DNA of 64,000 nt. Source: Antechinus flavipes (taxonomy: Eukaryota). Below the pieces are notes generated by a model. That model was not told the DNA's origin, did no database searches, and worked only from the letters and a program-made list of their open reading frames with translations. The position numbers and the translations under genes are program-made. Of the stretch, positions 41,601 through 64,000 are shown piece after piece. The DNA lies in contig NC_067400.1 in the NCBI RefSeq assembly GCF_016432865.1, positions 612,002,001 to 612,066,000 on the forward strand, read 5' to 3'. The first letter of the stretch is position 1. Each line of letters opens with the position of its first letter.

Positions 41601-44600
41601 CTATCCCCCGGGGCCCCCCGGCTATTGCCCCCAGCCCCCTCCGCCACAATCTCCTCCTCCTGGAAGGGCTCGGACCCCAGCAGGCTGGCCGCAAAGTCCA
41701 AGTCGGCCGCACTCAGCCCCGGCACCACCTCCATGTCCTCAAAGTCAGGGCCCAAGTCCTCAGGAGGAGGTGGGGGGGAGGTGGCTGGGCCGGGGGGAGC
41801 CAGCTCCCCTGAGGTAGGCATGAGGGCCTCGAGGGCTGAGGTAGGAGGGGGCACCCTGAGCTGAGGAGCGGGCCGGGGGGGCGGGGAGGCCCGTCGGGGT
41901 GGCAGCCGGGACGCCAGGGGGCTGGGACGGCGGGAACGTCTTGGGGGAGCCGGGAAGTCAGGATCCCCGACCGTTGGGATGTGGTGGGACAGAGATGATG
42001 GACTTCCTGGAAGGGAAGAGACCACGGGACAGCTGACCCTCCCGTCCTCAGGCTCCCGAGGTTGGGCGACTCTCCCGTCCCCACGCTCCCAGGGGCCGCC
42101 CACCCTATCAGCGGGGGCATTCACACTCACCGGGGGAGGGCAGCGGCCAGCAGGAGACGCCTCCTAGGGGCCTTCGGGAAGGGGAGTAGTTGGGCACTTT
42201 GATTCTAGCCCCTGAGACAGACCGTGGGGCCGGGGAGGGGGCGACGCTTGGCTCTGGAGGAGGGGGTAAGGGGCCCGTGCTCTGGGCAGGGGAGTAGCGC
42301 TCAGGACCCTGGCAAAAGGTGTCAGGCCCTGGTTGGGGGGGCTCGGCTCCCAGCAGCTCTGAAATCACATGACACACAACATCAGGGGAAGGGGAAGGTG
42401 TCCTCCCCGTAGCCGTTAACCTGTGGCACTCCCTTCCCTGCAGAGCCCCAGGGGTTCAGAACCAAGCTCTCTGGCACTGAGACACCTCTGGGCCCTCCCC
42501 AAGCCCAAGGCTCCCCAAAAGTACTCAGCGCTTCCTCGGAGGCCTCTGCCCGGCCCCCACTGCCGGGGCCTCCCTTTGGACTGGCCAATTACAGCCCGTC
42601 TTTCTCCCGCCTGTCCCATTTCCAGCACCGAGGCTCTCAATCCCAACCTCTCCCCTACAGATCCCTCTGTCTCCGATCCCTCTGACATGACCACAATCAT
42701 CTTCCTAAGGCATGAAATGTACCCTCAGTCTCCACCTCTTCCAGCTCCATAAGGCTCTGGGCTTCCCACTGAACCACACTAGCCCGGCCGGCCCCGCCCA
42801 CCCCCGCGGTCTGCCCCCTGGCAGACATTACAGCATCTCCCCTTTTACCAGTCTCTGTCCTAGCCCCCTCCTCCAAGACCCAGCTCGAGGCTGCACCCCC
42901 GCACCAAGCCTTCTGTGAGGACCTATGACCCCGGCCCCCGATACCAGACTGTCAAGAGACAAACAGCCCGGCGTCCCACCCACAAGGGCTACCACGGAGC
43001 TGGATGCGGAGCCGAACAGGGGACGGGGGCTGCAGAAGGTGGGAGGCGGCCTGTCCCTAACGGGTGAGGGCAGGGCATACCTGCGGGGGGGATGGGGCTG
43101 TGCACGATGGTGCGGTTCTCCTCCGCTGCCCCGATGTGGTCAGGCTCCTCCCGAGGGCCCCGGGGTCGATACTCGAGGATCCGGCACCGATACCAGCAGC
43201 GCCGCCGGGCGTCCACTGTGCTCCAGTACAGACGCGAGCACCTGAAAAGCGAGGAGGAGAAGTGACCGAGAGGGCTTGGGGCCTGGGGCCGGCTCCCGGT
43301 GCCTCCCACACACCCCTGGTGTGCCCGGGCCTCTCACTGGTAGCCAATGGGAAAGAGTCTTCCCTCGCAGTCCGACAGGTCAGAGAGCGTCCCCAGTGAA
43401 TCGATTCGGATAGAGCCTGCGAGAAGAGAGCAACAGGCTGAGCGTTGGGAAGGAGCCAAGGAGCCCAGTGTCCCGAGGGAGTGGGGAGAGAATGGGCACT
43501 TAAGAGAGGGGGAGGGGGTCTCACCAATGAGCACGTTGATGGCATCTGGCTCCAAACCCGTCAAAAACTTTCGCTTGAAACTGATGCCCTCGAAATCAAC
43601 ATAGACGCGGCGCAGAACGTCAAAGCCATCGGGAGTCACGATCTCCTAGGTGGGGGAGAAGGGCGTCAGGAAGCTTCGCAGCCCCCACGCTGCAGTGCCC
43701 CCGGTAACTGGCCGAAGGTCTTGGGGGTGGGGGTGGGGGTGGTGATGGGGCTGGGGGCAGTTAGAGGGCCCAGGTCCGCAGAACATGATGGAAGGGGGAG
43801 ACTCAAGAGAGGACCGGGCCAGCTCAGGGGAGACGGAAGGGAGAAAAAGCCCCTCTCCCGAAGGCCACAGCCCCACCTTGCCATCCAGGAGGTCCGTGTG
43901 TTTTTGGCAAAAAACCTTCTTGTCATCCTGGAAGATGCAGCAGCTGGCGCGGGCGCACATGAAGTGGAAATTGCTAAGGCAGGAGGACAAGCAGCAGCCC
44001 ACAGTGGCCCCAGGCTTCAGGCACAGCTCACACCTCTGAAAGGACAGCAGGGATCATGGACACCCCGGGACACTCTCCTCCCAGGCCCTTCGGCCACAAG
44101 CCCCACCCCGGTCGGTCAGAACCCTGCGGCTTCCAGGTGATCCCCGAGGGCGGTGGGCAAAGAAAGCCAAACAAGCATTTTCCTTTTAAACCTGATGGTG
44201 ATCCCAAGAAATAGGAGTCGTGGGTGGGATTTCCAGTTTCATTTTTGGACTAGGTAAAAGGCTGGCGCCACCACGGTGGCTGCCAAGGTGCCCAAGCCCA
44301 ACGCAGCCCCGGTCCTCACCATCTGCCGGCCGCGGGCCACAGCAGCGTGAACGTTCTTGAGGGAGCCATCGTTCTCCTCAAACACTTCCGCTGACCAGAT
44401 GGCACAGTTGACGTGCGTCCACTCGTTCTGTCCGATGTACAGGAGCCTTCCAGCCTCCTGGGTGGGGGGCAGAGTTAAGAAAGAAGAGGAGAGAGGACCC
44501 CAGAAGAGGAGGGTCCTAAGTGAGGATCCCAGGGTGGGCTGGGGGGCTGAGCAATGCCCACCTACAGAGCCACCTGTCTTACCTTGGAGTCGGCGTCCCC

Positions 44601-47600
44601 GTACTTGAGGCAGAGCGCACACTGACGAGGATCCTCCAGGTGGGACTCCAAAGCAGGCTCCTTCGTCTGCACGGCTGCTGAGTGAAGAACACTGTCAGGG
44701 CTGCAGCTCCAGTCTCCTGGCCGGGCCTGGCCCCGCACCCACCTCTAGACCCCAGGGGCCTCTCCCAGCCTCTACCTGGGACGGCGCCCCCCCCGGGGGG
44801 ATGGCTGGGCACCGGCGCCTCAGACTCTTGTTGTCTCCACTGAGCATAGATGTGATCCGCCGAGGGCGGCAGGACGGCGTTGGGCAGGACACCGCTGCAC
44901 AAAGGATGGGAGACAATCAGCGCCCCGGGGAAATACTCCCGTGGGGCGGCCCTTGCCTCCCCCCGGGCCTCAAAGCCCTGCTCACTTGGGCAGCCGGGTG
45001 TTCCGTCTCCAGTACTTGGGATCATGGGCATCAAACCAGCCAAAGGCAGACTCCAGGAGCTAGGGAAAGATAAGGGTGGAGGGCGGGGGCGTCAGTAAGG
45101 TGACCCGAGCAGATGGAGGGAGTGCTGGAGCTCTTCCCCACTTCACCCTTGATCCTCCTCACCTTCAGGAGGAGCCCTTTGGCCTGCCCCACAGCCCGGC
45201 GCTCAGGGGCATCTCCTTCCTCCATGTGTCTCATCAGGATCCCTACTACGTCTTCCATGAAGCTGTGCTGTAAAGGGAGGGGGGAGTTAGGGAAGGTCCC
45301 TCCTTTAGTTCTTCATCACTCCGAATCCCCCAGACTCCCTCGGCCCATTCTGGGCAGGACTGTGAGCCCCTTACCACGGAGCTGTAGTGCCCATCTTCAA
45401 AGAGCTGGCTCACGGCCCGGAGGTCGCAGGGTCCTCGGTGCAACTGTTCCCCGTCCTGTCCACACTGCAGCGGTATAAGAAGTGAGCGCCTCCCTGCAGG
45501 GGCCCTCTTATCTAGCCCCAAGAGAAGCCCCCCCATACCTGGGTGCACTGCAGCAGAGGTCCAGTCACCTTGGAGCTCAGTAGCCCTTGCAGAACCTGGT
45601 GCAGCCCCCCCCGAAGAGCCCCATCCAGGGCTTCTCGCCATCGGGGAGGGGCTGTCCCAGCACATGGCCCACATGTGTATAGCACCGAGTCTGGCAGCCC
45701 AGACAGAATCTCGTAGCCCTCGTCTGAAAGTGGGCAGAAGGACGAAAAGGTCAGGGAAAAGCCCAGAGCCAATGGCCCCTGGCAGCCCCGAGAGTGAACC
45801 GCAGGAGGCTGGGGGAAGCTGTGCCCAGGGACCTTCCCCCAAGGGGAAAGGGGACTGGGGGATCACCAGAGCGAGCAGGGCTGGGGTCCGGGCTGGTTCC
45901 CCCACCCACCTGAGAGGCCCTCGCACTTGGCGTGCACCCAGTGATCACACTGTGCGCACTGCATCATCTTGCTCTCGTAGTCGTTATCCTCATAGCAGCG
46001 TGTACAAATTGGGCAAAAGTTTCCTGGGGGAAGAGATGGGGGTTCAGAAGGGACACTCTCTCCCCACACGGTCTGGGCAACCTCCCCTTCCGGTGAGTCC
46101 CCACCCCCAGAGGCCCTCTACCTTTCTCATAAAGCTGGGTACAGCCCGGGCAGAGACTACAATCCCCCGACCACTCGCTGTCCCAGTTCTTCCCCGGAGC
46201 CGCTCCGCAGCTTTTACACCGGACACAGGCCGAGCAGATCTGAGGAAGAGAGGAGGAAATCAGTTTGAGGCCGGCCCAACGGCGCGGTCTGAAACAAGTG
46301 GCCAAAGCACGGGGATGATGGGGCCCAGACATCTCACCCAGTGACGCCTTTTTCGTGTGGCCCGGGTCGGGTAGCTGGGCCCCAAACAGGCGGGGTGGTA
46401 AGCATGGCGGCAGCGCTCACACTCCAAGAGGTGCTGTCGGGGTTTAAGATGAGAGGAAAGGTCACCCTCCTGGGATCTGGCTGCCAACCCCCCTCCCCCC
46501 CCAAGCCCACTCCCCGGGGCCCATCCTCGCACCTTGGTGCTCCGGCCCTTACGCCCACAGACGTGGCAGAACTTGCACCGACGGCAGCACCAGGTGTCGT
46601 GGTGCTGGGGCAGCGGCCGTTCCGCCTCCTCCAGGCAGAAGGGGTGGAAAGGGTCGCAGCAGACCTGGCAGAACACCAGCTGGGGAGAGAAAAGACCATG
46701 TGGCCACTGCCCAGGGAAGCAGAGGGGGCGCTGGGGGGCCGAGGAAAGGAAGCAGGAGACGTAAGCAAGGTTACGCTCGGGAGGGGCGGTGGCCTTGGAG
46801 GGGCCGGGGTGGTCTCAGACCTCATGTAAGCCTTTGCTGGCACATAGCAGACACACGAGGGGGGGACCCCCAGGCACAGAAGTGAGCACACTCAGACCAC
46901 CCATCAGCCACACGTTTTCCAGGTCACAGTCCTCCTGGAAGGAGGAAGAGATGATTGCAATCAGAGGCAGTGAGACCTTTCCTTCCCCCGCCTCCCCTCC
47001 CAACTCCTGGCGCTCACCCTATAAACCCTGGGAGCCTTTCACCTCAACATCTTGTTCAAGACACCACCCCCGCCCACTCGTGCTTCTCATTCCAAAGCCG
47101 GGAGGCCAGATCTTCCCGCCCCTCCACCTCCCCCAAACCCCGCGCTCAGAACTAAGGCCCATCCGGCGCCTGCGTCTCGGACCCTCACCCAAACCTCAGA
47201 GTCCACTCTACCTTGAAATCCACACGGACTCGGTGGATGCCATCGGGAGATTTCTGCTTTCCAGTCCAGCCATTGGGGAAGGAGGCAAAGGGTCCGGGGG
47301 CAGAAGTGTCCTGGGGAGGGGGGTGGGAGGGAGATGGGCCTGGAGGCAAGGCAAGGACAGCCAGGGTGGGGGGAGGGGATCCTGGCTGCACCCTTTTTTC
47401 TGTCCTAGCTCCCTAACCCTCCTCCCCAAACTGGAGTGGCATGGGTGCTCCCGAGCTCCCTCAAGATTTTCTTTAGAGCCCAGCTCGATGGTTCCCTCCC
47501 ATCTCCCTCTATAACCCGTTCCTTTGGGTCCATAAAACATACACTGGGAGGGGCTGCTGCGGCCTGTTCCGGTCTCCCTCCCCCCGTCTTAAAAGCTGGG

Positions 47601-50600
47601 CCCAGGGGCCCTTTCCCAGGCGACAGAGATGAGGCTGACCTTTTCCAGACGCCGCCGAGCCTTAAGCTGCACCACAGGCTGCAAGGTGGCCTTTCTGGGC
47701 CGGCTCTGCTCCTCCGGCTCTAGAAGGGGCAACTCTAGGGGAGAGAGGGAAGGATAAGACCTCTAGCCTGTTCCTCACCCCTCACCCCTCACATCCTCTC
47801 CAGCTATTTAAGAAAACCTGGACGTCTCACAGCTTGTGCTCTTTGCTCCCACTGAGTCGGAGAAAAGGCCGACTCTACAGAACTACAGAATAAACCCTTC
47901 CTTGTGCTAATAGCCCAGAAAAAGGTCCGTCCCTTCGGTCAGGGAATTATGGGAAACAGGGAAGGCCGGGGAGGATGACGGCCCTCACCATTTTCTCGGG
48001 GGGCACGGCGGCGAGAAGCTGAAGGAACACCCGGGTCAGAGTCGTCCGAGTCTTCGAAAATATCATAAGAAGGCCGCTGTTTGACGCAGCGCCGGGCTGA
48101 CTTGCGCTGCAGAAGGGGATCCTGCTCCTCAGGGCCAGGTGGGGCCACTGCCTCCTCCCGGGGCCCTCCGCCCCCTGACGCCCGCCGAGGCCCAGGAGGC
48201 CCAGGAGATGCTTCCAGGGATTCGTCGGAATCCCAGGGTAGAAGGGTCTTCACCATTGTGCGGCCTGTGAGAGCGGGGAGATGGTGTGGGGTATAAGAAG
48301 CACGAGCATGGGGAGTTGAGGGGATAGAGAGAAACAATCACAAAAGGCAAGGATGAAGTAGAAGGGAAGAAGTGGGAGAGGAAAGGAATGTGGAAATGAG
48401 GAAAAGATGGGGTTCAGAGAACAAAATAGGAATGATGGAGAAGAATGGAGCTGGGGCAGGGGCGGCCTCCTCCCCACTCCAGCTCCCGAGGTCATGGCTC
48501 TGCCTAAAAGTATTTTGGGTCTGGGGGCCTTTTTTTTTTTGGGAGGGGGGGCGGGTGAGGCCAGAGCCTTTCTGCTGGGGTCACATTACCTTTCTTGGCC
48601 AGGCGCTCCATCTTTCGGGCCTCAATCTTATCACACTTCCGGTACCTGGGAAGGGGAGCGGCCCATCACTGGGGGAGGGGACTAGAGATCAGGTGGGGAA
48701 GGGGAAGGCCAACCTCCGGGGTGGGGGGGGAGCTCACGCTGCCTTCTGAAGTGGCCAGCAGGACCAGGCGTGCACTAGGTGCTAAGATCCTTCAGGTAAC
48801 ACTTGGGCAAAAAGGGTGGGAGCAGGGACCTCAGGTGATTCACAAAATGCTGGGGGGGAGGGGAGGTCACTCACAAGCATCAGGGGGGTAGGACCCCAGG
48901 CAGAAAGGAGCAGCCCTACAGTAACTCACACACAGCACTGCTTTTTGGTGTTGGGGCCTCCAAACTTGGGTTTGTCCAGACAATTGACACAGGACCCACA
49001 GTCTTGCAGTCGCAGGCAGCCTCGACAACGGCCACACCGTGCCATCCTCATCTTCTTGCCCTGGTGGGAGGGCAGGGACCGTCTCGGGGCATGGGGCAGG
49101 GTCCCCCCAGTCCCTGTGGACCCCGAGCTCCCCCCCAGGCCAGCTGGTTCCACCTTTCCCCTTCGGGAGCGTGACGGGATGCCTTCGGTCTCAGAGGCTG
49201 AGGATGTATCTGCAGAGATAGGAACGAGCGGCATCAGGCCCAGGCAATCTCTTCCCCGGCCTCAGGTTTTCTTCTTGGCTCAGGGGGACCCCGACCCCCA
49301 GCCCCTTCTCACCGTCAGCCGCAAGGTCGTGCCGCTCCCGAAGAGGCAGGGCACTGAGCCGAGGGACGTCCTCGGGCACCATGGCCCGGGCCTGGCCCAG
49401 CGCCACAGCGGCGTGCCGACACACGTGTTTGATTCGAGGGCCCTGCACCGGAGACTCGGGACCCTGCGGGACAAGCAGAAGACACGATGGGCCCTCTCCT
49501 CAGCTGGCTCTCAACCCCCTGGCCAAATAAGGGTTTTCTCCACCCTCCTTCCCCGCAGCCAGTCCCGGGCTGGCGCATACTGGGGGTCTCTCCTTCTTGG
49601 CTTCCAGGAACTCGTCCTCAGACTTGACTGCTCCTCTCTCAGGGCTCTGCTTGAGGGTCCTCACAGCCTCTTCCACCTTCATTCCAGGGCTTGGCTGATA
49701 GGGAGGGGGAGAGATGAGGTCAGGGTGGGGAAACCATGGGTCTGAAGGTCGGATGCAGGAGAGACCTGAAACCCTGAGCCTGAGAGGGGAGCCCAGGTGG
49801 GAGAGCAGGAGACAAGGAGCCCGAAGGGAACAGGAAAGGAGGTCGTCTCACCAGAATTGGGTGGGCCCCCTTCTGCTGGTGCTGCTGCTGATCGATCTTA
49901 AACAGCTGGACTTTCGCCTTCTTGAGAAGACTGAACATCTTCTCTTCTACTCCAGAGAGAGGAAGCGAAATCGTGCCCCGAGCACAGAGACTCTGCTCCT
50001 CGGGGGGAGGGGGCGGAGGCGCCTGTGGCTGCCCATTGCTAGGAGCCGGTGAGCCTTGGGGGCCCTCAGCCTTGGTGGGGGTGGCTGCGGAAGGGCTGAA
50101 GCAGGGCAAGCTGAGGTGATTGGTTCGACTCCCTGTCCGTGCCTCAGGCTCTAAAATCGGTTCATCGGCTGGGGGAGGCTCTGGCTCAGGGGGATCGGGG
50201 GCCCCGGGCAGGGGTGTGGCTAGCACAGATTCATAGATCTTCAAGTGGGCTTCACTGGGAGTGAACTGGGGAGCTCGAAGCAGAAGAGGCCTCCGGGTTG
50301 GGGTCATGGGTGCTGGTGGAGGGGCTGGTGGAGGGGCTGGTGGAGGAGCTGGAGGTGGAGGTGGGGCTAGCTCCAAACTCAGTGAAGTCCATCGGAACGT
50401 GGGCTCCCTCAGGATAGAACGTCTCTTTTCAGGAAGAGAGGCTGGTGGGGGTGTTGGTGATTGGGGAGGTGGAGAAGGGGTAGGAGTAGGGGTAGGAGTG
50501 GGAATAGGGGTAGGGGTAGGGGTAGGAGTAGGAATAGGGGTAGGGGTAGGGGTAGAAGTAGGAGTAGGAGTAGGGGTAGGGGTAGGAGCAGGAGTAGGAG

Positions 50601-53600
50601 GTGGAGGTGGAGCCGGAGCTGGAGCCAGAGCCGGAGCCAGAGCAGGAATGGGAGCAGGAGTGGGATCAGGAGCTAGAGTTGTTTCTTGGGGGGCTGGTGC
50701 AGAGACTTCGACAGGGGGCCGAGATGGGGGGGAAGCTTCAGTCTTTGGGGGTCGGGGGGCCTCTTCGTCCATGAACCGTCGAGGGGTCTTGATGAGACGG
50801 GAAGATCGGGCACTCACCACAGGCATGATAAACTGTCTAATATTTTTCAGGAAAGTGGTCCCCTTGGGGGGGGCTGTAGGACTGTCTTCAGGAGGCCCTG
50901 CAGGAGGGACAGGGGTAGGGGGGGAGCCACCTTCTGGCCCTGCTCGGGCCGCCTCCCGTTCAGCTCGCTGGGTAGGGGTCAGGGGAGGCCGGCCTCTTTT
51001 TCGAGATCTAGTAGCTGCTGTGGCCAGGGGAGGGGGCGTATCTCCCTCCTCCTCAGGAGCTGGAGGGGGTGGAGGGGGTGGAGGTGGGGGAGGGGGAGGG
51101 GAAGGTGGAGGAGGGGGAGTAGGCAGAGGAGGTGGTGGTGAAGGTGCCTTTTCTTCCTCTTCCTCGGTCACCTTCTTCTCTTCTTCGTCTTTTTCTTCTT
51201 TTTCCTCCGGCTGCCACTTTGGATGTTGCTCCTCTCCTCGGTCAGACCCAACTCTACCTGGAGGGACTCCCCGGCGGCCCCCCCTTCGACGGCCTCGACC
51301 CCGTCCTGGCTCGGGTCCCAAGGTCAACTGTCCCATCTTCATCTTTTTAGCCTTTGAGACGAACTTGAGTAGGAGAGGGAGTCTCCCCCGGCCACGGCCC
51401 CTACCTCCTCGGCCCCCACGGCCCGAGTCCCCTCTTTTGTGACTCCCGGGGCCAGTGGCCTCTCGGTGTCTCCAGGCCCCAGCACGTCGACTTCCCGGGA
51501 CTATGGGGAGCGCGGCCTTGGGAGTCGCCGCGGCCTTGGGAGTCGCCGCGGCCTTGGGAGTCGCCGCGGCCTTGGGAGTCGCCGTGGCCTTGGGAGTCGC
51601 CGCTGCCACCGCTGGCAGCTTCTTCTTCTTCTTCTTCTTCTTCTTCGAAGAGCCCGGTGGCCGGCCTCGAGGCCGACGAGGGGTGGGAGATTCGGAGACT
51701 CGGCCCCGAGGACTTGGCGGGGCCTGGGCCCGCTGAAGCAGCTCAGCCAGTACCTGCACCATCCGCTCTTTGCCAGTCTCGCCCCGTCTCCGGGACGGGG
51801 CCTTCTGGGGGGGAAGGGCCACTTCGGCTGGGCGGGGAGGTGGAGGGGGGGTGGTCCTGTGTTTGCGGCCCCGGCCTCTGGGGGTTCCACCTGTGGGGAG
51901 AGTGGTCGTTTGTGGAGATGGATAACGGTGAACCCAAAGCACGAGGAGGCAGGAGCTGGAGCCGGTGAGAAATTGGGACCCGTTATGGAGATGCTTTTCT
52001 AGAGGACTGGAAAGTCTCTGCCCCTCACTCACCTTGCTGGGACCGCAGCGCAGAGCGCAGGGAACTGGGGGCCACATCTTCATCTGAGTGGAAACCCAGA
52101 AACTCCTCCTGATGGAGGGGACCAGGAGTGAAGGGAGTAGTCAGTGCCAATGAACCCTCCTCCACTTGACCCCGCATTAGGTTGTACCCCACTTCCACCT
52201 GCGCTAGCCCCAAACCGGGAGAAATTTGGGAAAGCAAAGCAGGATCCAAGGAAGGCTCCAAGTCTTCCCTGTACTCCCTCTCTTCAATTCGTGGCCCTGA
52301 GCCCTTCCAGAAAGGAATGGCTTCTGCTAGTCTAGGCAGAATAAGCCTAAACTCAGGGGCTCACAGCGGCATTTGCCTACAAGTGGCTCCAGTTCAGAAA
52401 AGCTCTCCAAACAGAGCCGGGCACTCAGCCCCCCCAAAGACAGGCACAGGGTCAGAATCCGGCTGGGCTCCAGCCCAGGCCCACAACACCAGGACAATGC
52501 TCGGCAGCCCCTCGGGCTAAACATTACAATCAACCTCAAGCTTCCTGAGCCCCCTCGGGCTAAGATGCAGCCACAGTCCCAAACTGCACCTCCGAACAAA
52601 GTCCCGCAGACTGGGGGAGGGGAGGGGAAGAGGGAGGGGGAGGGGAGGGGGGTGGGATCTACAGCCAGCCAAGCCTTCAGAGACCTCGAACTTCCTGGTT
52701 GTCACTTTACATCTCCCCATCCAAATTCCCTGGGAGGAATCTTCCTTATGCCTTCATCCCCACCCCAAATTAGAAGGCAGGGAAACTGAGGTATCAGCAA
52801 GGCCAGGAGGGAGTTTGGCCAAGGTCACAGGGCAAGCCAAAGGCGTTCAAGAGATGAGGATCCCGGGGTCTTCCCAACCCGGGGTTCCACCCACCAGAGC
52901 CACGCTGTTTCTAACAACTCCCGAAGGCTGAGTATCCCCAGACATCCTGCTCTGTTTTCTGTGTCCCCTCCCCCCCCACAAAACCCCCCGAGCTTCTCAG
53001 ACACTAGCGGGACTCACTGGGCGCTCCCCCTTAGCTCCAGCCCCCCTAAGGAGCCAGCCAGTCCCCACCACCCCAACCCCCAGGCTAGCAGCCGGGCCCT
53101 CGCCTCGGTCTCCCAACTCTGGTCCCCTTCCTTCAGCCCCCACCCCGTCCCTAGCAAGGCAGGGCCTCCCCCACGCCAGTCCCCTCCCCAGCTCTCCGAA
53201 CCCGGGTAGGGGGGAGGTTCCTCCCCCCTCCCCCGGGGCGCTGCCGGCCCCTCTCGCCCCAGCCTGCTCACCTCCTCCTCCTCGTTCTCCTCGTCAGTGC
53301 TCTCCTCCACCTCCTCCTCCTCCTGCCCCTGGCCCGGGTCGGACTCCTCTTGCAGGCCGGCCCGGCCCCGGCCTCGGCCCCGACTCCGGCTCCGGCCCCG
53401 GCGAGTGTGCAGTCCCTTCCACAAACGGCGGAACCGGCGCAGGCCCCGGCGGAGGCCGAGCAGGCGGCGCAGGGCCGTGTCCTCGCCGGGTTCCGCTCCT
53501 CCAGCCCCGGCCGCGCCGCCGCCGCCTCGCCGCAGGGCCACCCGGGCCCGCTCCCCGCCGCCGCCCCGCCCGCAGCGGCCCCCGCCCCCGCCGGGGCCCC

Positions 53601-53673
53601 GTGGCCGGCCCGGGAAGCGGCCCCGCGCCGAGCCAGGCCCCGGGCAACCGCCGCCGCCCGCCGCCGCCGCCAT
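38697..53673 (-). CDS. KMT2B: Histone-lysine N-methyltransferase 2B (MLL2/MLL4 alias), about 2734 aa
   Basis: 37 exons (minus): 53673-53272, 52108-52033, 51890-49852, 49694-49581, 49463-49313, 49209-48930, 48645-48590, 48264-47989, 47734-47640, 47310-47212, 46934-46821, 46679-46533, 46433-46338, 46239-46122, 46023-45910, 45723-45539, 45464-45375, 45267-45163, 45059-44986, 44894-44776, 44677-44583, 44457-44320, 44035-43877, 43645-43525, 43416-43338, 43241-43081, 42358-42131, 42006-40722, 40603-40514, 40434-40325, 40214-40077, 40003-39929, 39830-39653, 39557-39450, 39352-39269, 39179-39050, 38972-38697 (8205 nt). Menin motif [15 protein letters not shown] fingers, FYRN, taspase site QLDGVDD, FYRC, WIN (GCARAE region), SET and post-SET (..CRRFLN*). 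AATAAA (minus) at 38433-38438. Confidence 0.98.
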
Positions 53674-54900
53674 CTTGGCACCGTGAGAGGGGCCGGGGAG
53701 GCGGGGGGAGGGGCGGCCCGGGCGCAGGACCGGGGGGAGGGGAGGGGGCGGGGCAGCCCGCGGCGCACGACAATAATAAGCGCCACAGCGCCCCGACCCG
53801 GCCGGCGGGAAGCGGCGCGCCCAGCCCAGCCCCACCAACACCTCCACCAGCACCTCCACCTCCACCTCCAGCAGTAGCAGCAGAGCAACAGCACCACCAC
53901 TACTTCCACTACCACTACCGCTTCCACCACCGCTTCCACCACCACTACCACCGCGGGGCACCACGGGAGCTAGAGCCTGACGCGCCGCCCGGCCCCTTCT
54001 GCTCCCCGCCGGGAAGACAGAGGCCTGGGGTCTCAGGGAGGAGCAAAAGAAGTGCGGCGCGGGGGCCGCTGGGAAATGTAGTCCCTCCACCTCACCGCTT
54101 CCGTTAGCCACGGGAAAGGAGCCGGGGGCGGAGAGTGGCCGACTACGTGCTCCCGAGCAGGGCACTAGAGGGCACGAGGTAGACCGATGGGGGGCTCGGA
54201 GGCCGCTGGTACATGTGGTCCTTCTTCCCCACCAACTCCATTGTTCTTCCCGGCTCAAGCTTAGCAGGGCGGACTACAGCTCCCAGGGGGCAATGTGGCC
54301 AAGAGGAAAGAAAAGAAGGGCGGAGCGACAAAGCACACGAAGTGTGAGAGCGAACCGCCTCGGTTTTGCGGAGGGAAGGACTTGGGGGGGAAAAGGGCGT
54401 CAGACCCCCACGCACTGGGGCCCCGGGGGCTGGGTTGGCGGCTTCGCGTGGAGACGCCCACTTCCCCCACCGGGGGAGAGCGTTGCCAAAGTTTGGTGAG
54501 CGCGGGAAGCCCCCAGACCCTTCGGGTCTGCTCGTGGTGCCGAGCCGGCTGGACACTTCCTTAGAGTAAGAGGCATCTCCGCCTCCTGCGGGCCCTCCCT
54601 CCCCCCGCCACTGCCAGGGTCTCGGGTGACGCTGCTGGGGGAGCCCAGACCCTGTCCCCCAGGAAAGCGACCGAGGGTCTGGAGAGGCGGGGGTCACAGG
54701 CGCGATGGTCGGGGGCTGCTCGCATGCGACCGCTAAGTCGGACACACTTTTCCTCTTCCTCCTTAATTCTCCTTAATCCTCCTCCTCCTCCTCCTTCTCC
54801 TCCTCCTCCTCCGAGAGCCGAGGCTCTGGCAGCTTTATTGCCTATCCGCATCCCCTCCGGCCGCGCCAGCGCGCCCGCACTGAGGCAGGCAGCCGAGGAG
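53200..54900. promoter_or_regulatory. KMT2B CpG island and promoter
   Basis: Very CpG-dense; ACTACATTTCCCA motif at 54070-54082; triplet-mosaic repeat at 53830-53950. Confidence 0.75.
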
Positions 54901-56671
54901 AGCGCCCCATCTCCGGGCTTGGCCGTGCCGCTCCAGTGCCGTTTGTGGCCAGAGAATGGGGGCACAATGAGAAGACGAGGGACGGTTTCTGGAGGAAGAC
55001 TAGAGGGAAGCGGCCTGGACGGCCCATCCAGGGGGCAGTTGTCCCGGTGGGCAGCTCCGAGTGTGGGCCCGCCTAGGAGCCGTGTTGGGGCAGCTAGCCT
55101 GGCACAGTGGACACTGGTAAGGGTCCGTGCTGTGTGTCCCGAGGTGCTTGGCTGCGGCAGAGAAGTCCCGGGAACGCTGAGGGCGGAGGCGACGAGATTA
55201 GGGCTTCTCCCCTAGGGAAGTCGGAGAAGCACAGGTGAAAGGCTGCGGCCGGGCTGGCCCCAGGCCCAGGTACGACCATTTGGGCCGGAGGGGAAGGGGG
55301 AGCAGCCTCCTGGCTCTGTTCTGCTCAGAAGGACCCCGCCCCTCCCAAGATGGAGAGGAAAGCATGGACTCCCTAAGGCAAGACACCAAGTACCTTCCCA
55401 GACTCTGCAGCGAGTCTCCATCTTTCCTCGTCTGGGCCGAGACCCCTAGGGGGGACATGGGCCCTGCTAACGTGTGGGGTGAGCAGCAGCCTCTGGGGAA
55501 GGTCGAGCGAGGGCTCCGGGAAGTCCCTGGGGCTGGCCGCCAGGGGGCAGGGCGAGCACGGCGGGGCCTGCCCATGGGGATCCCAGCTCTTACCTGCCCT
55601 GCTCCTGCGCTCAGAGGTGGCCTCCATCCTCAGTTGGAGGGACCTGCTCGAGCCACGGGGTCTTCCCTCTGCCCATCCGAGGGGCTTGGCCTGCCAGTAA
55701 ATGAGAGGTGCCCAGCCCAGGCCAGGAATGGGAGAACTTAGTGAGGCAGGGGAGGGAGGAAGCATCCAAGCCTCTGCTCCGAGTCCTGGCTACCAGAACA
55801 CGCTCTGCGGATTCTTTCCTGCCTTATCTAGGCAAAAGTGCCTTCGTGGCTGCTCCTGACATTTCCATGTTCTGTCCCAAGAGCCTCCCTCTTGTTCCAC
55901 CTCCCCAAACTCACCTCTGTTACTAAGGCCACATTTCTCCTCAACTCCAGGGACTGGGGTGCTATGGGAGAAGGGGGTCCCATGGCCTCTGAGCAGCCTG
56001 GCCTGCTGCTGGGGGCATGGAGATAAGGGGCCTCCTCAGCCAGCCTTGGGAGGTTCCCAGACTCTGAAGACCCTTGGGGAGGGGTCTCTGCCAAGGGCCC
56101 CTGCCTGTGGCTGCATTCTGTGGTAGATTCTCCTGCTGCTTTTAACGGGACCACCTCCAGGCTCACCGGCTCTTCTCCCACCTTCTAGGAGATGTGCTTG
56201 ATCTCTGCCCATCATTAAAGGGTGTCCCCAATTCCAACCTTTTGGATCCATCCTTCCTTCCTCTTTCCTCTCCAATTGGTTCTTGCTTGTCCTGGGACTG
56301 TTCCAGGCCCTGATATCCCTTTTTGACCTCTTTCCCAAGAACCCTCCTGCACTCTACTTCCAGGGTCTCTGCACCCGAGCCCCAGGCTGCCTGGAAGAGG
56401 ACCCAGCTCTCCAGGCCTCAGCATCAGGGTTTCCCCATCAGCAGTGCAAAAAGTGGGCAGAGATGGGAGGGCCGATGCCCTAGAGGTCCATCACTCTCTC
56501 CGGGCCAGCTGCTGGCTCCTGTTTGCCAGTACCAGGCTGTGTGTGGCCTGGGAACTTGTGTGTCCCACACTGACTACAGCATCACGAAGTGCTGCCCTTA
56601 AGAGTAGCTACTGGTCAAACTAGTCCGTCTACACCATGGGGGCTAGGCAACTGCACTGAAGGCAAGGCCAC
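54834..56671 (-). pseudogene. ZBTB32: ZBTB32 (ROG/FAZF/PLZP) unitary pseudogene
   Basis: Syntenic position and strand, upstream of KMT2B. BTB remnant: GTG at 56671 replacing ATG (VALPSVQLPSPHGVDGLV*), TGA at 56617-56615, then frameshifted HSLVLANRSQQLARR, GETLMLRPGELGPL and AAWGSGAETLEVEC. The last exon from 55211 reads [41 protein letters not shown]...QLPPGWAVQAASL*SSSR. AATAAA (minus) at 54834-54839. Confidence 0.9.
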
Positions 56672-59559
56672 TGCCCCCTGTCCAGGGAATGGACTCACAA
56701 ACTCTTGGAGAGAATCTGCAGAGTGGGGAAAGGCCCAATGAGGGAGTTGTTGGACCAGAGCCCCTAGGCCTGAAACATGAATAACTTGAAAAGAGAAGAA
56801 TTCTGTCACCTACCAAGAGAGGAAGAGTTAGAACTGCACTAGGACTGATGGAAGCTAGATCTTACTGAGGGGTTTTAGGGAGAGAAGACACCATAACAGA
56901 ATTTTTGACTCCCTCAGTAAAGTACAGTCCCTCTGTAGTTCAGACTGAGGGAAGAACATGAAGTTTTCCGAAGCCCTAGAGGATAAGAGGGCCAGGATTC
57001 CAATAATACAAAATAAGAGATAAATTTTGAGGGAGTTGGGAGCTCCTCCATCACTGACCACCAAAGCACAGCTAGCAGTCACTCAATATTCATTCCTTTT
57101 AGAAGTCGGGTGGTAGATGGAAAGGAATTGCTACTTAGTGACAGAAATGGAATCAGGCATGAGGTCAGAATTTCCAGGGGAATAAGATCACAACACTTTC
57201 AAGGAAAACCCTGGAACTGAGGACTCCCCAGCATTGAATTAGAAAGGGGATGAGCTTCTATTCTTAGGGAGTCAGGAGAAAAGGAGAAACTGAGTTTGGG
57301 AGATCAAAAAAACCTGACCCCAGGGAAGATCTGAAACCAAAAAGAAGAAAAAAACGAGACTGAAAGCAGATTTTCATTAAAGACAAAAAAAGACATTTGC
57401 CGGGATGGAAGCTATTATTTTCCAGGTTTAGAGAAGGGTGAAAAGATTGAAAAGGCCCAATGCTCCAAATGACTTTAAATTTAGTATTTTGTGAAAGAAA
57501 AATGAGAATGAAGAAATGTGACAATCATGCCTCTTACAAAAAGAAGAGGATATTCTGGATAAAAGTCTCTTTCAGAGACAAAATTATCTTTATGGAAAGG
57601 GGGATAGAGTATTGGATAGTATACAAAGACTATTAAGTGGGTTTTAGAAACAGGTATAATGTGGGGTTGGGAAAGTAGATTACCAGTTGGAGATAAACAA
57701 TTCAAGCCTCTAAACTACTCTTAGAGCTTCTGCTCCCCAGACCTCAATTTCTATTGGCTCCACCTACTTCCCTTGGGCCTCCTCATTGGATGTCCACGTC
57801 TTACTCTCTTTTGTTCAAGAAGGAGAATTTCACACCCTATTATATGCCTGAATATCAATTTTTGCTACTAGAATCACCTACTTTGTGACCTTGAGCCCTT
57901 TTCCTAGGGTTGACAGCAAGTTTGTAGTTGACTCTGGGTTAGAAAGATGGAAATTATTTATACTCTTGGTCCTGAAAGGGACATAGATTCAAAAGAATGG
58001 ACACAAGTCAAATACAAAGTGATCTTATCCCTCATGCTGAATCATACTGAATACCTCTGGATCAAGATTTGCTTAATGAGAATGTTCCTTATCGCCTAAA
58101 CTCCACAGTTGGTGAAAAGAAATATTGACCAAATGGCCTGACTTTAAACTATCCACCAAATTCTGAAAGAGAAGCTCCAGGGTAGAGTTAAAATGTCTCA
58201 ATATTCTCATTTTCTGTCTCTCTCTCCCACTCCCCGCCCCCCCTTCCCCCTCCCAAACACAGCTCAAGGTTTCTTTTACTTCCTGGACAAAAGGCATAGC
58301 TAGTACTTTCTGATACAGGATAAAAAAGAAAAACTCAAATTACTTATGCTTTCTTCTATTTCTTACCACAAGCCCCTCAGACTTGATGTTCCATCCTAAG
58401 ACCAGACCCCTGTCCTTCCAACCTTTTTGCCAGTTGTATCTTTCTTCCTAGCACCCAGCTGTGAACAAGAATGGCTTTAAGAGTCCCACCTCCTCCCACA
58501 TCCTCGTGAAAATTCTTTTGAGAGTAGGCTATTTTGTCCTTTTATCTATATCACCTAGCACAGTATCTTGTACAAGGGTGACTAGTTCTTGTTTGTTTGA
58601 TTGAATTATTATTATCTAGATTAATTTCTTTTTTTTTTCAGATATTCTCTCCATTTTCTGCTTTCTTTGAAGAAAGTTAGTTTGTCTTCTACCTGTCATG
58701 AATAATTAAATTGAGTGTGCCACTGGAAGAGAAGATAGGGAAAGGCAGGTGCAGTGAGGAAAAGAGTAGTGGTTCTGAGTCAGTTGAGGGGGAATGTGAG
58801 TCAGAATGAAAAAGGAAAATGCAAATAGGCTATCTATACTCATTTGCCCCTCCCTTGAACCTCAGAGATTTTCCTTTACTGTGCTTTTGACTGTATCCTC
58901 TTACTCACGAGATCCAAGTAAAGGGACACACTCACAGAAACTTAATATATTGATCAATAAATCCATATACACAGAATACAGACATAGAGAATCCTCTCCA
59001 AAATATGCTAAAAGATATGAGAAGAGAGGAATCAAGAAAAGGAAAGGGACAGTTGTGACAGCTTGGAAAAAAACTGGGAAAAATACATGGGGGTGATTAC
59101 CCCACTCTGCCCGCCCCGCATCATGTGCCAGTGACTCAAGACCTTTGCTTTTTTGATCTAGAGATTTTAGGGGCTGTCCCCAAAGAAAAGAGTACCCCCC
59201 TTACAAATTATACCTGTAGGAACAAGAATTACCACCCTGGGATCCTAGGATGCCAACACAGGATAGAGCCTATGACACAGACAGCAAGGGGACTCTCCTC
59301 TAATGGACACAAGACCTCAGAGAACAGGAAATCCCATGGGTAAAGACCCATATTTCACTGGACTAGGAGTATAACAGGATTTTCATACTAGTTCTCCCAC
59401 AAACTAGCTGGGCCTAATTCAATAAGCATATGTTAAGTGCCTAGTATATCCATTTTGTTTTTACCATCATATTCCTGCCAATTGTGTGTCAGGTCTTTGA
59501 GGGCAGAAATAATTTTCTTTGATTCTTCCTATAACACTTATTACACAGTATCTAAAGGT

Positions 59560-60580
59560 AGATTCATGAGAGAGAACTGCTGGTTGAACTGAAATAAAGT
59601 GGGGACAGAGCTTAGGAAAGAGATGAGAGCTGAATACTGGGACAGGGGAGTCATAGGAAGAAAAAAGATGATTGAACCTGCAGGTGCTGATGAGATCACT
59701 AAGAGTAGAAATAGAGAAGGACCCAGAGTTTTGGAATACAACTAAACAGAATGGAGGATGATGATCCTTCAAAGGAGCCTGAGAAAAGTCAATCAGAAAA
59801 CTAGAAAGAATCAGAACAAAAAACTCGGAACTGAGTACCCCCAGGAGGAAAAGGAGCTGATAAACAATGTTGAATGCAATGGTCAAGGACAAGGACTGAA
59901 AAAAGGGCATTAGGTTTAGCAACTGAGATATTGGTTTATTTTCTTGGAAGAAGCCATTTCATTTCTAAACTGAAAGGAAATAACCAGCTCCCTCCCCAAA
60001 AAAAAAAAGATATGAAAGACACTTGTTCCACTATTATAGAAATAGAAGGTCCACAAAATACATCGAAATTATTTGGGGGGCGGGGTTCTCTTTTGGGGAG
60101 GAAGATAATAGAAAATTTCTAGGAAAGGGGAAAGAACAGGAACATGGATAAATTTAGAAATGTAAAAAAACCCCAAAAATATGTCATTAATTTTGTTGTT
60201 TAACAGAAGGCTTTTGTGACAGTACAAGAAAGAAATGATGAGGACAAGAACTAAGATGAAAGCTTCATGAGGGGAGAGAGCTTTTAAAAGATGTGGGAAA
60301 AATTATCAAAAGATGTAGCAATGGATTAGCCATAGGGGCTGAGAGTGAAAAGCTGAGGATGATACTGAAGTTTTGACTAGGATGACTGAAAGGATGATAG
60401 TGCCTCCAGAAGTAGTAGGGAAGTTTGGAAGAGGAATGGGTTTGGTGAACAATTTCTAGTTCTGTTTTGTATCTATTGAGTTTACTCAGATACTACACAA
60501 CATTCACTTCATAATGTCCAAAAGGAGTTGGCTATGTGGAACCGAAGCTCACCAGAAAGATTAGGGCTAAATAGATCTGT
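59560..60580 (-). mobile_element. Old LINE-2 fragments
   Basis: gagaactgctggttgaact..., ggtcaaggacaaggactgaaaaaagggcattaggtttagcaa and aggatgactgaaaggatgatagtgcc...ggaagtttggaagagg resemble reverse-strand L2 ORF2/3' sequence. Boundaries approximate. Confidence 0.55.
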
Positions 60581-60705
60581 AGAGATGTTACTTGCATTCA
60601 CAGACCAGAGACTTGGAAGGGTACACATAGTCACCATAAATGGATAAATATCTAGCAAAGGGTAAAATAAGTCCCCTACAGCTCTAAAGATTATATGAGT
60701 CTAAA

Positions 60706-60906
60706 CTGTTCGGTTCTGCAAACATATATTGTATCTAGGATATACTGCAACATATCTAACATATATAGGACTGCTTGCCATCTAGGGGAGGGGATGGAGG
60801 GAGGGAGGGGAAAAATCGGAACAGAAGCGAGTGCAAGGGATAATGTAAAAAAAAATTATCCTGGCATGGATTCTGTCAATATAAAGTTATTATAAAATAA
60901 TATATA
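60706..60906 (+). mobile_element. 5'-truncated L1 3'-UTR insertion with target-site duplication
   Basis: Nearly identical to 61605-61790. Flanked by the 20-bp TSD aaagattatatga(g/c)tctaaa at 60686-60705 and 60907-60926. Confidence 0.85.
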
Positions 60907-61125
60907 AAAGATTATATGACTCTAAATGGAGTTTAATATCCCCAACTATGTCCATGGGGGCCCTTTGCTTCTCACCTTGAAGTCAGTAATACATTGAGGC
61001 CCTTTTAGTCTTAGTTGTGTTGTTCTGGGACAGTGGCAGGAAATTGTATACCTTCGACGGTGAGCTGCTAGTTGTCCCTGGAAGTTCTCACTTCCCTCAC
61101 ATTCTCAATAAGAATTTACCTGCTC

Positions 61126-61801
61126 GTGTTTCTACTGGGCTTATACCCCAAAGAGATACTAAAGAAGGGAAAGGGACCTGTTTGTGGCGGCCCTGTTTAT
61201 AGTGGCTAGAAGCTGGAAAATGAATGGATGCCCATCAATTGGAGAATGGTTGAGTAAATTGTGGTATATGAACGTTATGGAATATTATTGTTCTGTAAGG
61301 AATGACCAGCAGGATGAATACAGAGAGGACTGGCGAGACTTACATGAACTGAAGCTAAGTGAAATGAGCAGAACCAGGAGATCATTTTATACCTCAACAA
61401 TGATACTGTTTGAGGATGTATTTTGATGGAAGTGGATCTCTTCAATAAAGAGAGCTAATTCAGTTTCAATTGATCAAAGATGGGCAGAAGCAGCTACACC
61501 CAAAGAAAGAACACTGGGAGATGAATATAAACTGCTTGCATTTTTGTTTTTCTTCCCGGATTATTTATACCTTCTGAATTCAATTCTCCCTGTGCAACAA
61601 GAAAACTGTTCAGTTCTGCACACGTATATTGTATCCAGGATATACTGTAACCTATTCAACATGCAAAGGATTGCTTGCCATCTGGGGGAGGGGGTGGAGG
61701 GAGGGAGGGGAAAAATCGGAACAGAAGTGAATGCAAGGGATAATGTTGTAAAAAATTACCCTGGTATGAGTTCTATCGATAAAAAGTTATTTAAAAAAAA
61801 A
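61126..61801 (+). mobile_element. 5'-truncated LINE-1 (ORF2 C-terminus, 3'-UTR, polyA)
   Basis: ORF 61184-61426 ..AALFIVARSWKMNGCPSIGEWLSKLWYMNVMEYYCSVRND is the L1 ORF2 C-terminus. G-rich 3'-UTR tract, A-tail, and 13-bp TSD aatttacctgctc at 61113-61125 and 61802-61814. Confidence 0.9.
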
Positions 61802-62159
61802 AATTTACCTGCTCTGCTATTTTCCTAAAGAGGAAGCCAGAAACTCAAAGGTTCTGAGAACCTAGTCCAGCTTCAGCCTCATGGGAAGAGGAAATAAGGA
61901 TTAAGATACTAAGGAAGAACCTAGGCAGGCAAAAGCACACTGGAAGAGGTAGAGGTGGGTGGGGGTCACAAATATATTTCACAAGCATTTTCCATAGTTT
62001 GAAATATTTCACATGGGCTTGAACCAAGGTAGTTAAACAGGAGTGTGCCATGCAAACCTGAAATGCATTCTGTCCAGGGGTTCAGAACCACTGACAGCAT
62101 ATCTATAGGAGCCCAAACTTCCAAAGAACTACAATCAAAATCATACCTTTTGAGCACAA

Positions 62160-63600
62160 CCTGATTTAATTCTGTCCAGCTCTAGACTCTCTCCTGAGCT
62201 CTAGTTTCACATTGCCAACTGCCTAATGAACATCTTGAATTGAATATTCTGTAGGCACCTCAAACTCAACATATCCAGAACAATTCATTACCTTTACCTT
62301 CCCCAAGTCCCCAACCCTACTCTTTTTCTAATTTGCCCATCACTGTTCAGGCACCACTACATCCCCAGTCGCCAAGGTTTTGACTTTTCATTCCCACTCA
62401 ACCAACATACCTAAAACTTTGCCAAATCTTGTGATTTCTACCTTTACAACATTTCTCCCATATAAACCCTTTTTTTTTCAGTCATATAACCAGAACCCTA
62501 GTTCAGGCTCTCTCAATTGGACTATTGGAATGGCTTTCTAACTGGTTTCCTTGTCAAAGGTCCTTTCCCCATTCCAATATCAATTTTCAACTCAGCATCA
62601 ATAGGACTTTTCTAAATCAAGGATTTTCAATATTTTTTTATTTCAAGGACTCTAGTAATCTGATAAATATAGGGTAATGTTTTAAAATGCATAAAATAAA
62701 GTATATAGGACTAAAAAGAAATACTATTATCTTGAAATAGTTATCAAAATATTTTTAAAAAAAAGTTCACAGAGCCAAATGAAGTATCCTTGTTTTCAAC
62801 TGTAGGCCTGATGCTATCATCTCCTCAATGAACTCCACTGATTATATTAAAAATAAAACAGAAAGTGCTCTTTTTTGTCATTTAAAGTACTTTATAATCT
62901 GGCTCTTTCCTCCCTTTCCAGGTTTTTTTTTTTTTTTTTTTTTTACACTTTATCTTCTACACACTTTTAGATCTAGCTACATACAGTGGAGTATTTTCAG
63001 TCCCTTAAACTGGACAGATACCATCTCTTTGCATTTTCACTCGCTGTCTCCATCTGACTAAAATGATCTTCTCCCTCATCTTCTGACTCAGTTTCTTTGG
63101 CTTCCTTCAAGATTTGGTTCAAATTTCACCTCCTTCAGGAGGTCTTTGTCTCAATCCCTCTTATTCTCCCCCCACCCCAGTGACTTCTTTTCTCAGATTG
63201 CCTTCCATCTCCTCTGTATATAACTTCTATGTACCTGTTTAATAACAAGGTGATTTCTCCATTAAAATTTGAGTTCCTTGAAGGACAAGAGTATTTTTCT
63301 CTTTCTTTTTCTCCTTACTCTTCAAAAAAGTACCTGCCTTCCTTTAAGTATGCTAAAAATCCCACCTTCTATAAAAAGTCTTTCCTGATTCTTAATCTCA
63401 GTGGTTTCCCTAAGATTACTCCCAATTTATCCTGCATATATTTAGTATGGTCCATTATACTGTGAGTCCCTTGAGATCAGGGACTGCAAGTATTTCTTGT
63501 CCATTGTATCACCAGAACTTAACACAATGTATGGTATATAAAAGGTGCTTAGCTAGCTGAAGGAATGATTTAATAAATGCTTGCTGACTGACTAGTTGGC
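62160..63600 (+). mobile_element. Old LINE-2 fragments, interrupted by a possible hAT/MER-like remnant at about 62630-62790
   Basis: ctctcctgagctctagtttcacattgccaactgcctaatgaacatc...cacctcaaactcaacat and the L2-like 3' end aaggtgcttagct...aaatgcttgctgactgact. Boundaries approximate. Confidence 0.6.
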
Positions 63601-63744
63601 TATTTGTTATACAAAGATTCTTCAGGGTAAAAAAAGATTCAACATAAATATTATTTAAATAATTAATGGCAGGCCATGCAAAGTAGACTGAGTTTACAGA
63701 AGTTCAGTTTACATTTATCCTTTCTCAGAAATACATCTATTTTG

Positions 63745-63921
63745 GTGCAGGGGATAAAGCACTAGCCTTGAAGTCAGGAGGACTTGAGTTTAAATCTGAC
63801 CTCAAACACTTAACACGTCCTACCTGTGTGACCCTGGGCAAGTCACTTAACCCTAATTGCCTCAGCAAAAACTAAAACAAAACAAAAAAAAAAAAAAAAG
63901 AAAAGAAAGAAAAGAAAAGAA
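63745..63921 (+). mobile_element. WSINE1-type marsupial SINE, 5'-truncated, with A-rich tail
   Basis: gtgcaggggataaagcactagccttgaagtcaggaggacttgagtttaaatc...tgtgtgaccctgggcaagtcacttaaccctaattgcctcagc plus A-tail. 18-bp TSD agaaatacatctattttg at 63727-63744 and 63922-63939. Confidence 0.9.
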
Positions 63922-64000
63922 AGAAATACATCTATTTTGCAAAAAGATGTTTTCTTAGATCTTTTAGAGAATAAAATTTGCCATAAAGTTCCATGAAGGC

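Follow-up and report, generated by a model that had tools for sequence, protein, structure and literature searches.

The BTB-zinc-finger protein ZBTB32, also called ROG, FAZF, TZFP or PLZP, is intact in the tammar wallaby, where its 466 amino acids comprise a BTB domain and three zinc fingers. Here we describe its counterpart in a stretch of 64,000 nucleotides from Antechinus flavipes (contig NC_067400.1, positions 612,002,001 to 612,066,000), termed the window. Positions 54834-56671 on its minus strand hold what we read, with a probability of roughly 0.88, as an in-place (non-processed) ZBTB32 pseudogene at the ancestral locus beside KMT2B. With the wallaby gene and those of eutherians (e.g. 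human, BTB structure 3m5b) the remnant has in common its location upstream of KMT2B on the same strand and its exon order, and the GEKP linker as well as the QRSRDFSA and QLPPGW motifs of the wallaby protein are kept. In contrast to the wallaby gene, it has no start codon, contains at least six stops, frameshifts and lost zinc ligands, and its middle exons are eroded beyond secure recognition within a shortened gene body.

The three opossum isoforms (XP_056681303-5; P0106, P0001, P0107) start in an upstream exon and are without a BTB domain, and the koala model (XP_020827585.1; P0011) is without both the BTB domain and finger 1. These models resemble the remnant in being marsupial ZBTB32 loci with no BTB in the model, and the koala model joins exon 3 to the last exon just as RNA of a relative of the window does. 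Their last exons, however, are still open, the opossum keeps three fingers, and no lesion is visibly common to them and the window. At the end of exon 1 the koala model gives LKPGEKCGLTIRG, shifted by one frame from the wallaby EAWREMLPQEQR. For the platypus protein (XP_028920767.1; P0008) no Pfam BTB match is on record and the amino terminus is very divergent. Overall, constraint on ZBTB32 seems weak except in eutherians and macropods. The closest paralogue, ZBTB16 (PLZF), likewise combines a BTB domain with C2H2 fingers and was the next-best family in our protein searches, but it has nine fingers and lies at another locus, and the annotations of devil, wombat, koala, Gracilinanus and wallaby show it intact.

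Identity and position of the ZBTB32 remnant

Translation of the minus strand from 56671 to 54834 in three frames gave pieces that are plainly ZBTB32. A 38-residue BTB piece (56607-56494) had the ZBTB32 BTB domain, 3m5b, as its sole match in a search of the whole PDB. A 65-residue stop-free finger piece (55197-55003), searched against 1.8 billion representative proteins, had opossum ZBTB32 as its top match (3e-19), followed by eutherian, platypus and koala ZBTB32 and only after these by ZBTB16 fragments; its identity amounted to 65% to ZBTB32 versus about 42-46% to ZBTB16. Pfam analysis of the short stop-free pieces left the BTB domain undetected and returned only weak, sub-threshold zinc-finger matches, and an exact look-up of 10 open reading frames (ORFs) of the window in the protein collection yielded no match.

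As the reference we used tammar wallaby ZBTB32 (XP_072472398.1; P0137), reached by a search with an older wallaby model, which together with many eutherian proteins documents a full-length functional orthologue. This protein was aligned to the window exon by exon in a frameshift-aware manner, with z scores derived from shuffled queries. The remnant of the first coding exon (55915-56671, minus strand), comprising the BTB/POZ domain from 56671 to ~56330 and then the linker, reached z = 24.5, and that of the last exon (54867-55211, minus strand), comprising fingers 2 and 3 and the carboxy-terminal tail, z = 19.6. The alignable pieces of the BTB domain are 77% identical to the wallaby. For the last exon the identity to the wallaby is 68%, compared with 89% between wallaby and opossum, indicating accelerated change in the lineage of the window.

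The GT donor of exon 1 (55914-55913, minus strand; acagag/gtgagt) coincides with the end of wallaby exon 1 (..PQEQR), and an AG acceptor at 55213-55212, a further GT donor at 55593-55592 and the gene's former poly(A) signal, AATAAA (54834-54839, minus strand), are likewise in place. KMT2B (38703-53673, minus strand) follows directly downstream on the same strand, with its ATG (MAAAAGGGG) at 53673. Its identity rests on PDB sequence search, in which the CXXC exon (48932-49261) gave 4pzi (KMT2B, 7e-25) and the SET exon (38703-39005) 7bre (KMT2B, 1e-61) as best matches; Pfam analysis of the large KMT2B ORFs gave no match. This order corresponds to that in wallaby and opossum, where a gene of 2660-2675 amino acids begins about 540-550 bp downstream of ZBTB32. 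In the opossum the order is a tetraspanin gene, ZBTB32 and then the large gene; the tetraspanin gene was seen for this species only, the flank of the wallaby look-up being too short to reach it. The conserved order on one strand is presumably UPK1A, ZBTB32, KMT2B, and no UPK1A exon was evident inside the window. Together, the position beside KMT2B and the kept intron-exon structure identify the original gene rather than a retrocopy, in agreement with the original prediction of a ZBTB32 pseudogene.

Lesions of the terminal exons and possible traces of the middle exons

At the start of exon 1 the ATG is changed to GTG (56671-56669). Wallaby isoform X3, which begins further upstream, aligns across this codon, with PFPGQGA-M-PLPSVQL opposite PFPGQGA-V-ALPSVQL in the window. 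A TGA at codon 19 (56617-56615) and a second one at 56493-56491 interrupt the BTB domain, which additionally contains at least four frameshifts, a +1 shift at ~56602/56600 (after codon 23) and further ones near 56480, 56443 and 56394. The linker has several indels, including a frameshift near 55948, and ends in TAG (55925-55923) and TAA (55922-55920) directly before the kept GT donor, so that after inspection of the frames the end of exon 1 reads EMWP, two stops, QR and then gt. In the last exon, GEKP is followed by TAA in place of Phe (55200-55198), Arg replaces both Cys of finger 2 (55194-55192 and 55185-55183), Cys replaces the final His of finger 3 (55053-55051), a Tyr codon has become TAG (55002-55000), and extra DNA at ~54966-54935 shifts the frame of the tail.

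In sum, the remnant starts with GTG, is interrupted by six or more in-frame stops, is shifted out of frame several times and has lost zinc ligands. No intact ORF is left, and therefore no BTB-zinc-finger protein can be made from it. The window has 0 runs of N. The start-codon change, the stop at codon 19, the BTB frameshifts, the linker stop, the loss of the Cys pair and the Tyr-to-stop change had all been noted in the original prediction, and each was recovered by the wallaby alignment or at the coordinates given above; its remark that nothing is visible as an ORF is equally borne out.

Between the exon 1 donor (55914) and the last-exon acceptor (55212) lie 702 bp, an interval ~900 bp shorter than in the wallaby. 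The original prediction had seen only about 90 bp between an SEQNRA exon remnant and the last exon, and had concluded that the exons carrying finger 1 are deleted. This part was not confirmed: SEQNRA (55331-55314) resembles eutherian SQNQLA only, with marsupial orthologues reading HSPDNLRCHL or RSLLDNLGFH at this place, and the 702 bp between exon 1 and the last exon include an exon 3 remnant with RNA support and a suggestive, statistically weak candidate for finger 1.

Exon 3 is probably present at 55594-55690 (minus strand), its GT donor at 55593-55592 being used in RNA of a related organism, termed H. Its 5' boundary is uncertain, with an AG at 55692-55691 that is used in H and an alternative AG at about 55646-55645. 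Read in the frame that is in phase with the last exon, 55644-55594 ends in ..SLQLRMEATSERRSRAG, to be compared with SLQLGTALPSSNEKKISDQRSSEG in the koala and SLQL..EQRSCEAG in the wallaby, each ending at the junction. A possible, weak remnant of exon 2 was picked out by eye at 55745-55843 (minus strand), where ALLPR before a stop, VL/W and SSLPCL precede ctaagt, the donor GT apparently having become CT. Finger 1 is possibly present but wrecked. The candidate for its exon (55394-55469, minus strand), aligned with the wallaby as QGPCPP, a stop, then GSRPRRGKMETRCRVWEG and gt, is suggestive only; in it a TGA (55448-55446) replaces the second Cys, another stop lies at 55469-55467, a short deletion has occurred and both His ligands are changed, with a GT at 55393-55392 in the correct phase. 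The 185 bp that separate this candidate from the last exon are similar to the isoforms of wallaby and opossum that retain the intron (LAL..C..FPL). The protein scores of exons 2-4 were not significant, ranging over z = 0.5-2.2 against shuffled queries and p = 0.1-0.4 in Smith-Waterman comparisons with shuffled DNA (exon 2 candidate, z = 0.5 and p = 0.2-0.4; finger-1 candidate, z about 2 and p about 0.11-0.28). Fingers 2 and 3 have left clear remnants; finger 1 is a candidate only.

Related organisms, age of the loss and residual transcription

Contigs from public sequencing runs of organisms D, E and H, the last being an RNA library (run X18), were aligned to the ZBTB32 stretch, skipping 54750-54818 as a repeat; a fourth run, X4 of organism C, yielded no contig there. 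The 40 differences listed comprise 18 seen in several runs, 19 in D alone and 3 in E alone, and include all those seen in at least two runs. Organism D, 2% divergent from the window, has 35 substitutions, 0 of them in any stop codon. The indels of organism E (3.4%) amount to 26 gap letters and leave the BTB frameshifts at ~56480, 56443 and 56394 untouched. Organism H (about 5-7%) carries an uncompensated 1-nucleotide deletion of its own at 55170 in finger 2, a 5-nucleotide deletion at 55994 and two 1-nucleotide deletions at the start codon. The presence of the same lesions in independent contigs of D and E excludes an assembly error as their source, and the frameshift particular to H adds to the evidence that the disabling mutations are real.

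No substitution seen in several runs turns a stop back into a sense codon, indicating that the stops did not arise on the branch of the window and D; most simply, to judge from these alignments, they would predate the split from E. In contrast, one T at 56600 is missing in both E and H, so that the +1 frameshift there belongs to the lineage of the window and D only, which marks it as a young lesion and the decay as ongoing. Inactivation predates the split from D and E, and very probably also that from organism H (about 7% divergent). By a rough calculation from the amino-acid divergence from the wallaby, each site has taken up ~0.1 neutral substitutions since the gene was freed from constraint. 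This is several times the distance that separates the window and H per lineage, and as a rough estimate it would place the loss probably some tens of millions of years back. The earlier description of the gene as long dead is thus well founded, given the stops common to D, the BTB frameshifts common to E and the separate finger-2 frameshift of H.

The distribution of ZBTB32 among marsupials was taken from protein searches, considering the matches listed (best 120). Among these, the marsupial ZBTB32 proteins were those of tammar wallaby, opossum and koala only, and none came from the devil or any other dasyurid, from wombat or from Gracilinanus; as a control, ZBTB16 of devil (Sarcophilus), wombat, koala, Gracilinanus and wallaby is present in the same protein collection. 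With the wallaby linker as query, wallaby proteins only were returned. Unnamed ORFs from assemblies of sequencing runs (Logan) that matched the opossum query were all of eutherian type. Since the wallaby gene is intact, the loss is either younger than the Australian marsupial radiation or recurrent. It is at least dasyurid and not marsupial-wide, and the loss originally ascribed to this marsupial lineage has to be narrowed in scope. The lesions are common to D (stops) and E (BTB frameshifts), with an intact protein in the wallaby.

Other marsupial lineages may have weakened ZBTB32 independently, as their annotation models suggest. A wider pattern of recurrent decay or truncation is a tentative proposal that we consider possible and somewhat doubtful. 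It would comprise the dead dasyurid gene, the koala gene that lacks the BTB and skips finger 1, the BTB-less gene of Monodelphis, and wombat and Gracilinanus, for which no protein was found, with the intact gene of macropods as the exception. If it were true, most marsupials would do without this Blimp-1 cofactor in the responses of natural killer (NK) cells, CD8 T cells and memory B cells.

The relic is still transcribed and spliced in organism H. Its RNA contigs have k-mer depths of 30-50 over the remnants of exon 1 and the last exon and of 3-8 over 55211-55592; in a library of 0.6 gigabases, depths of 30-50 are too high for genomic carry-over. A spliced contig (depth 84) joins 55594 to 55211 on the minus strand across a GT..AG intron, showing that splicing still makes use of the old acceptor of the last exon and of an upstream donor, and this join of exon 3 to the last exon is the same junction as in the koala RefSeq model. 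At its other side, the exon starting at the AG 55692-55691 is joined in H to a GC-rich upstream exon, of which 30 loose letters were not found in the window with up to 3 mismatches; it brings to mind the first exon of the opossum models, which lies far upstream in a gene spanning 16.8 kb. The other loose end of the H contigs is a diverged continuation of the genome. Furthermore, a 1495-nucleotide contig (53718-55213, minus strand) extends from what is left of the last exon past the poly(A) signal and ~1.1 kb into the exon-1 region of KMT2B. It could stem from read-through, or the assembler may have merged overlapping transcripts.

Alternative explanations and significance

Some points weigh against an in-place pseudogene. 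The middle exons are not statistically recognisable and their interval is shortened by the ~900 bp noted above, and part of the gene may be deleted. That E has the stops follows from the differences listed and is to this extent inferred. The transcription evidence comes from one RNA run of organism H and not from the window's own species. Genome coverage is the 64-kb window, and the unitary status given in the original prediction, with no intact copy elsewhere, is to this extent presumptive. The remnant could accordingly be a decayed copy, with an intact ZBTB32 relocated or duplicated elsewhere and its function kept, although no positive observation favours this. No dasyurid ZBTB32 protein occurs among the matches listed, even though Sarcophilus ZBTB16 is in the same collection, and a remnant at the ancestral KMT2B-adjacent position with its intron-exon structure is the original gene, which makes such a relocation very unlikely. 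A functional gene disguised by sequencing or assembly errors might be thought of in a region of 65% GC that is prone to indels. Six of the lesions, however, are stops of the substitution type, zinc-ligand codons are replaced, and independent contigs of other species (runs X8 and X9) have the same stops and frameshifts; we give this explanation next to no credence.

Equally far-fetched is a shortened, BTB-less protein consisting of fingers only. The BTB-less opossum and koala models and the splicing of exon 3 to the last exon in H would fit such a product, but the last exon of the window is interrupted by two stops (55200-55198 and 55002-55000) and no longer encodes the Cys pair of finger 2 or the last His of finger 3, and H has a frameshift in finger 2. 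The locus might instead be kept as a non-coding RNA or regulatory element, acting for example on the KMT2B promoter ~1 kb downstream, a proposal that is compatible with a pseudogene and that we regard as unlikely, if less so than the others. It draws on the H contigs covering both terminal-exon remnants at depths of 30-50, on the spliced contig using the old donor and acceptor, and on the contig extending into the KMT2B exon-1 region. On the other hand, the divergence of 2-7% among the window, D, E and H, together with the many indels, has a neutral appearance, dead genes are commonly transcribed whether they died recently or long ago, and the contigs, from one run of one species, show neither strand nor level.

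The history that we favour is that of the in-place pseudogene. ZBTB32 decayed where it stood: orientation and exon order were retained, as were some splice sites and the poly(A) signal, while the start codon was lost and stops, frameshifts and zinc-ligand losses accumulated. After inactivation the locus drifted neutrally and collected lineage-specific indels, and in at least one relative it is still transcribed and spliced as non-coding RNA.

ZBTB32 represses GATA3 and cooperates with Blimp-1, and in the mouse it acts with Blimp-1 to limit the effector and memory responses of CD8 cells, is required for the NK-cell response to murine cytomegalovirus (MCMV) and restrains memory-B-cell recall (PMC5578684). 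The functional summary in the original prediction was therefore roughly right for GATA3, NK cells and memory B cells, and needs amendment for Blimp-1, where the relation is one of cooperation and not repression of its programme (PMC5578684). The phenotypes of Zbtb32 knockout mice can be mild (PMC5909056), and this moderates the weight of the loss for immunology.

A dasyurid lineage long without ZBTB32 would be a natural knockout, of some interest for marsupial immunology, for instance in tumour-prone or semelparous dasyurids, and for annotation it means that dasyurid gene sets should not be expected to contain ZBTB32. Within the literature library searched, no publication links ZBTB32 with marsupials. 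Lineage-specific losses of single regulators are common, and this together with the mild knockouts makes the finding useful and not surprising; it is an ordinary lineage-specific gene loss.

In the surroundings of the remnant, a purine-rich (GGA/GAG)n run occupies 54770-54812, between the ZBTB32 poly(A) signal and KMT2B. Upstream of the remnant, positions 56700-64000 of the window consist of ~7 kb of AT-rich, repeat-like DNA. A compositional edge coincides with the 5' end of the remnant, where the GC content falls from ~65% to 35-46% and the observed/expected ratio of CpG to 0.05-0.2.

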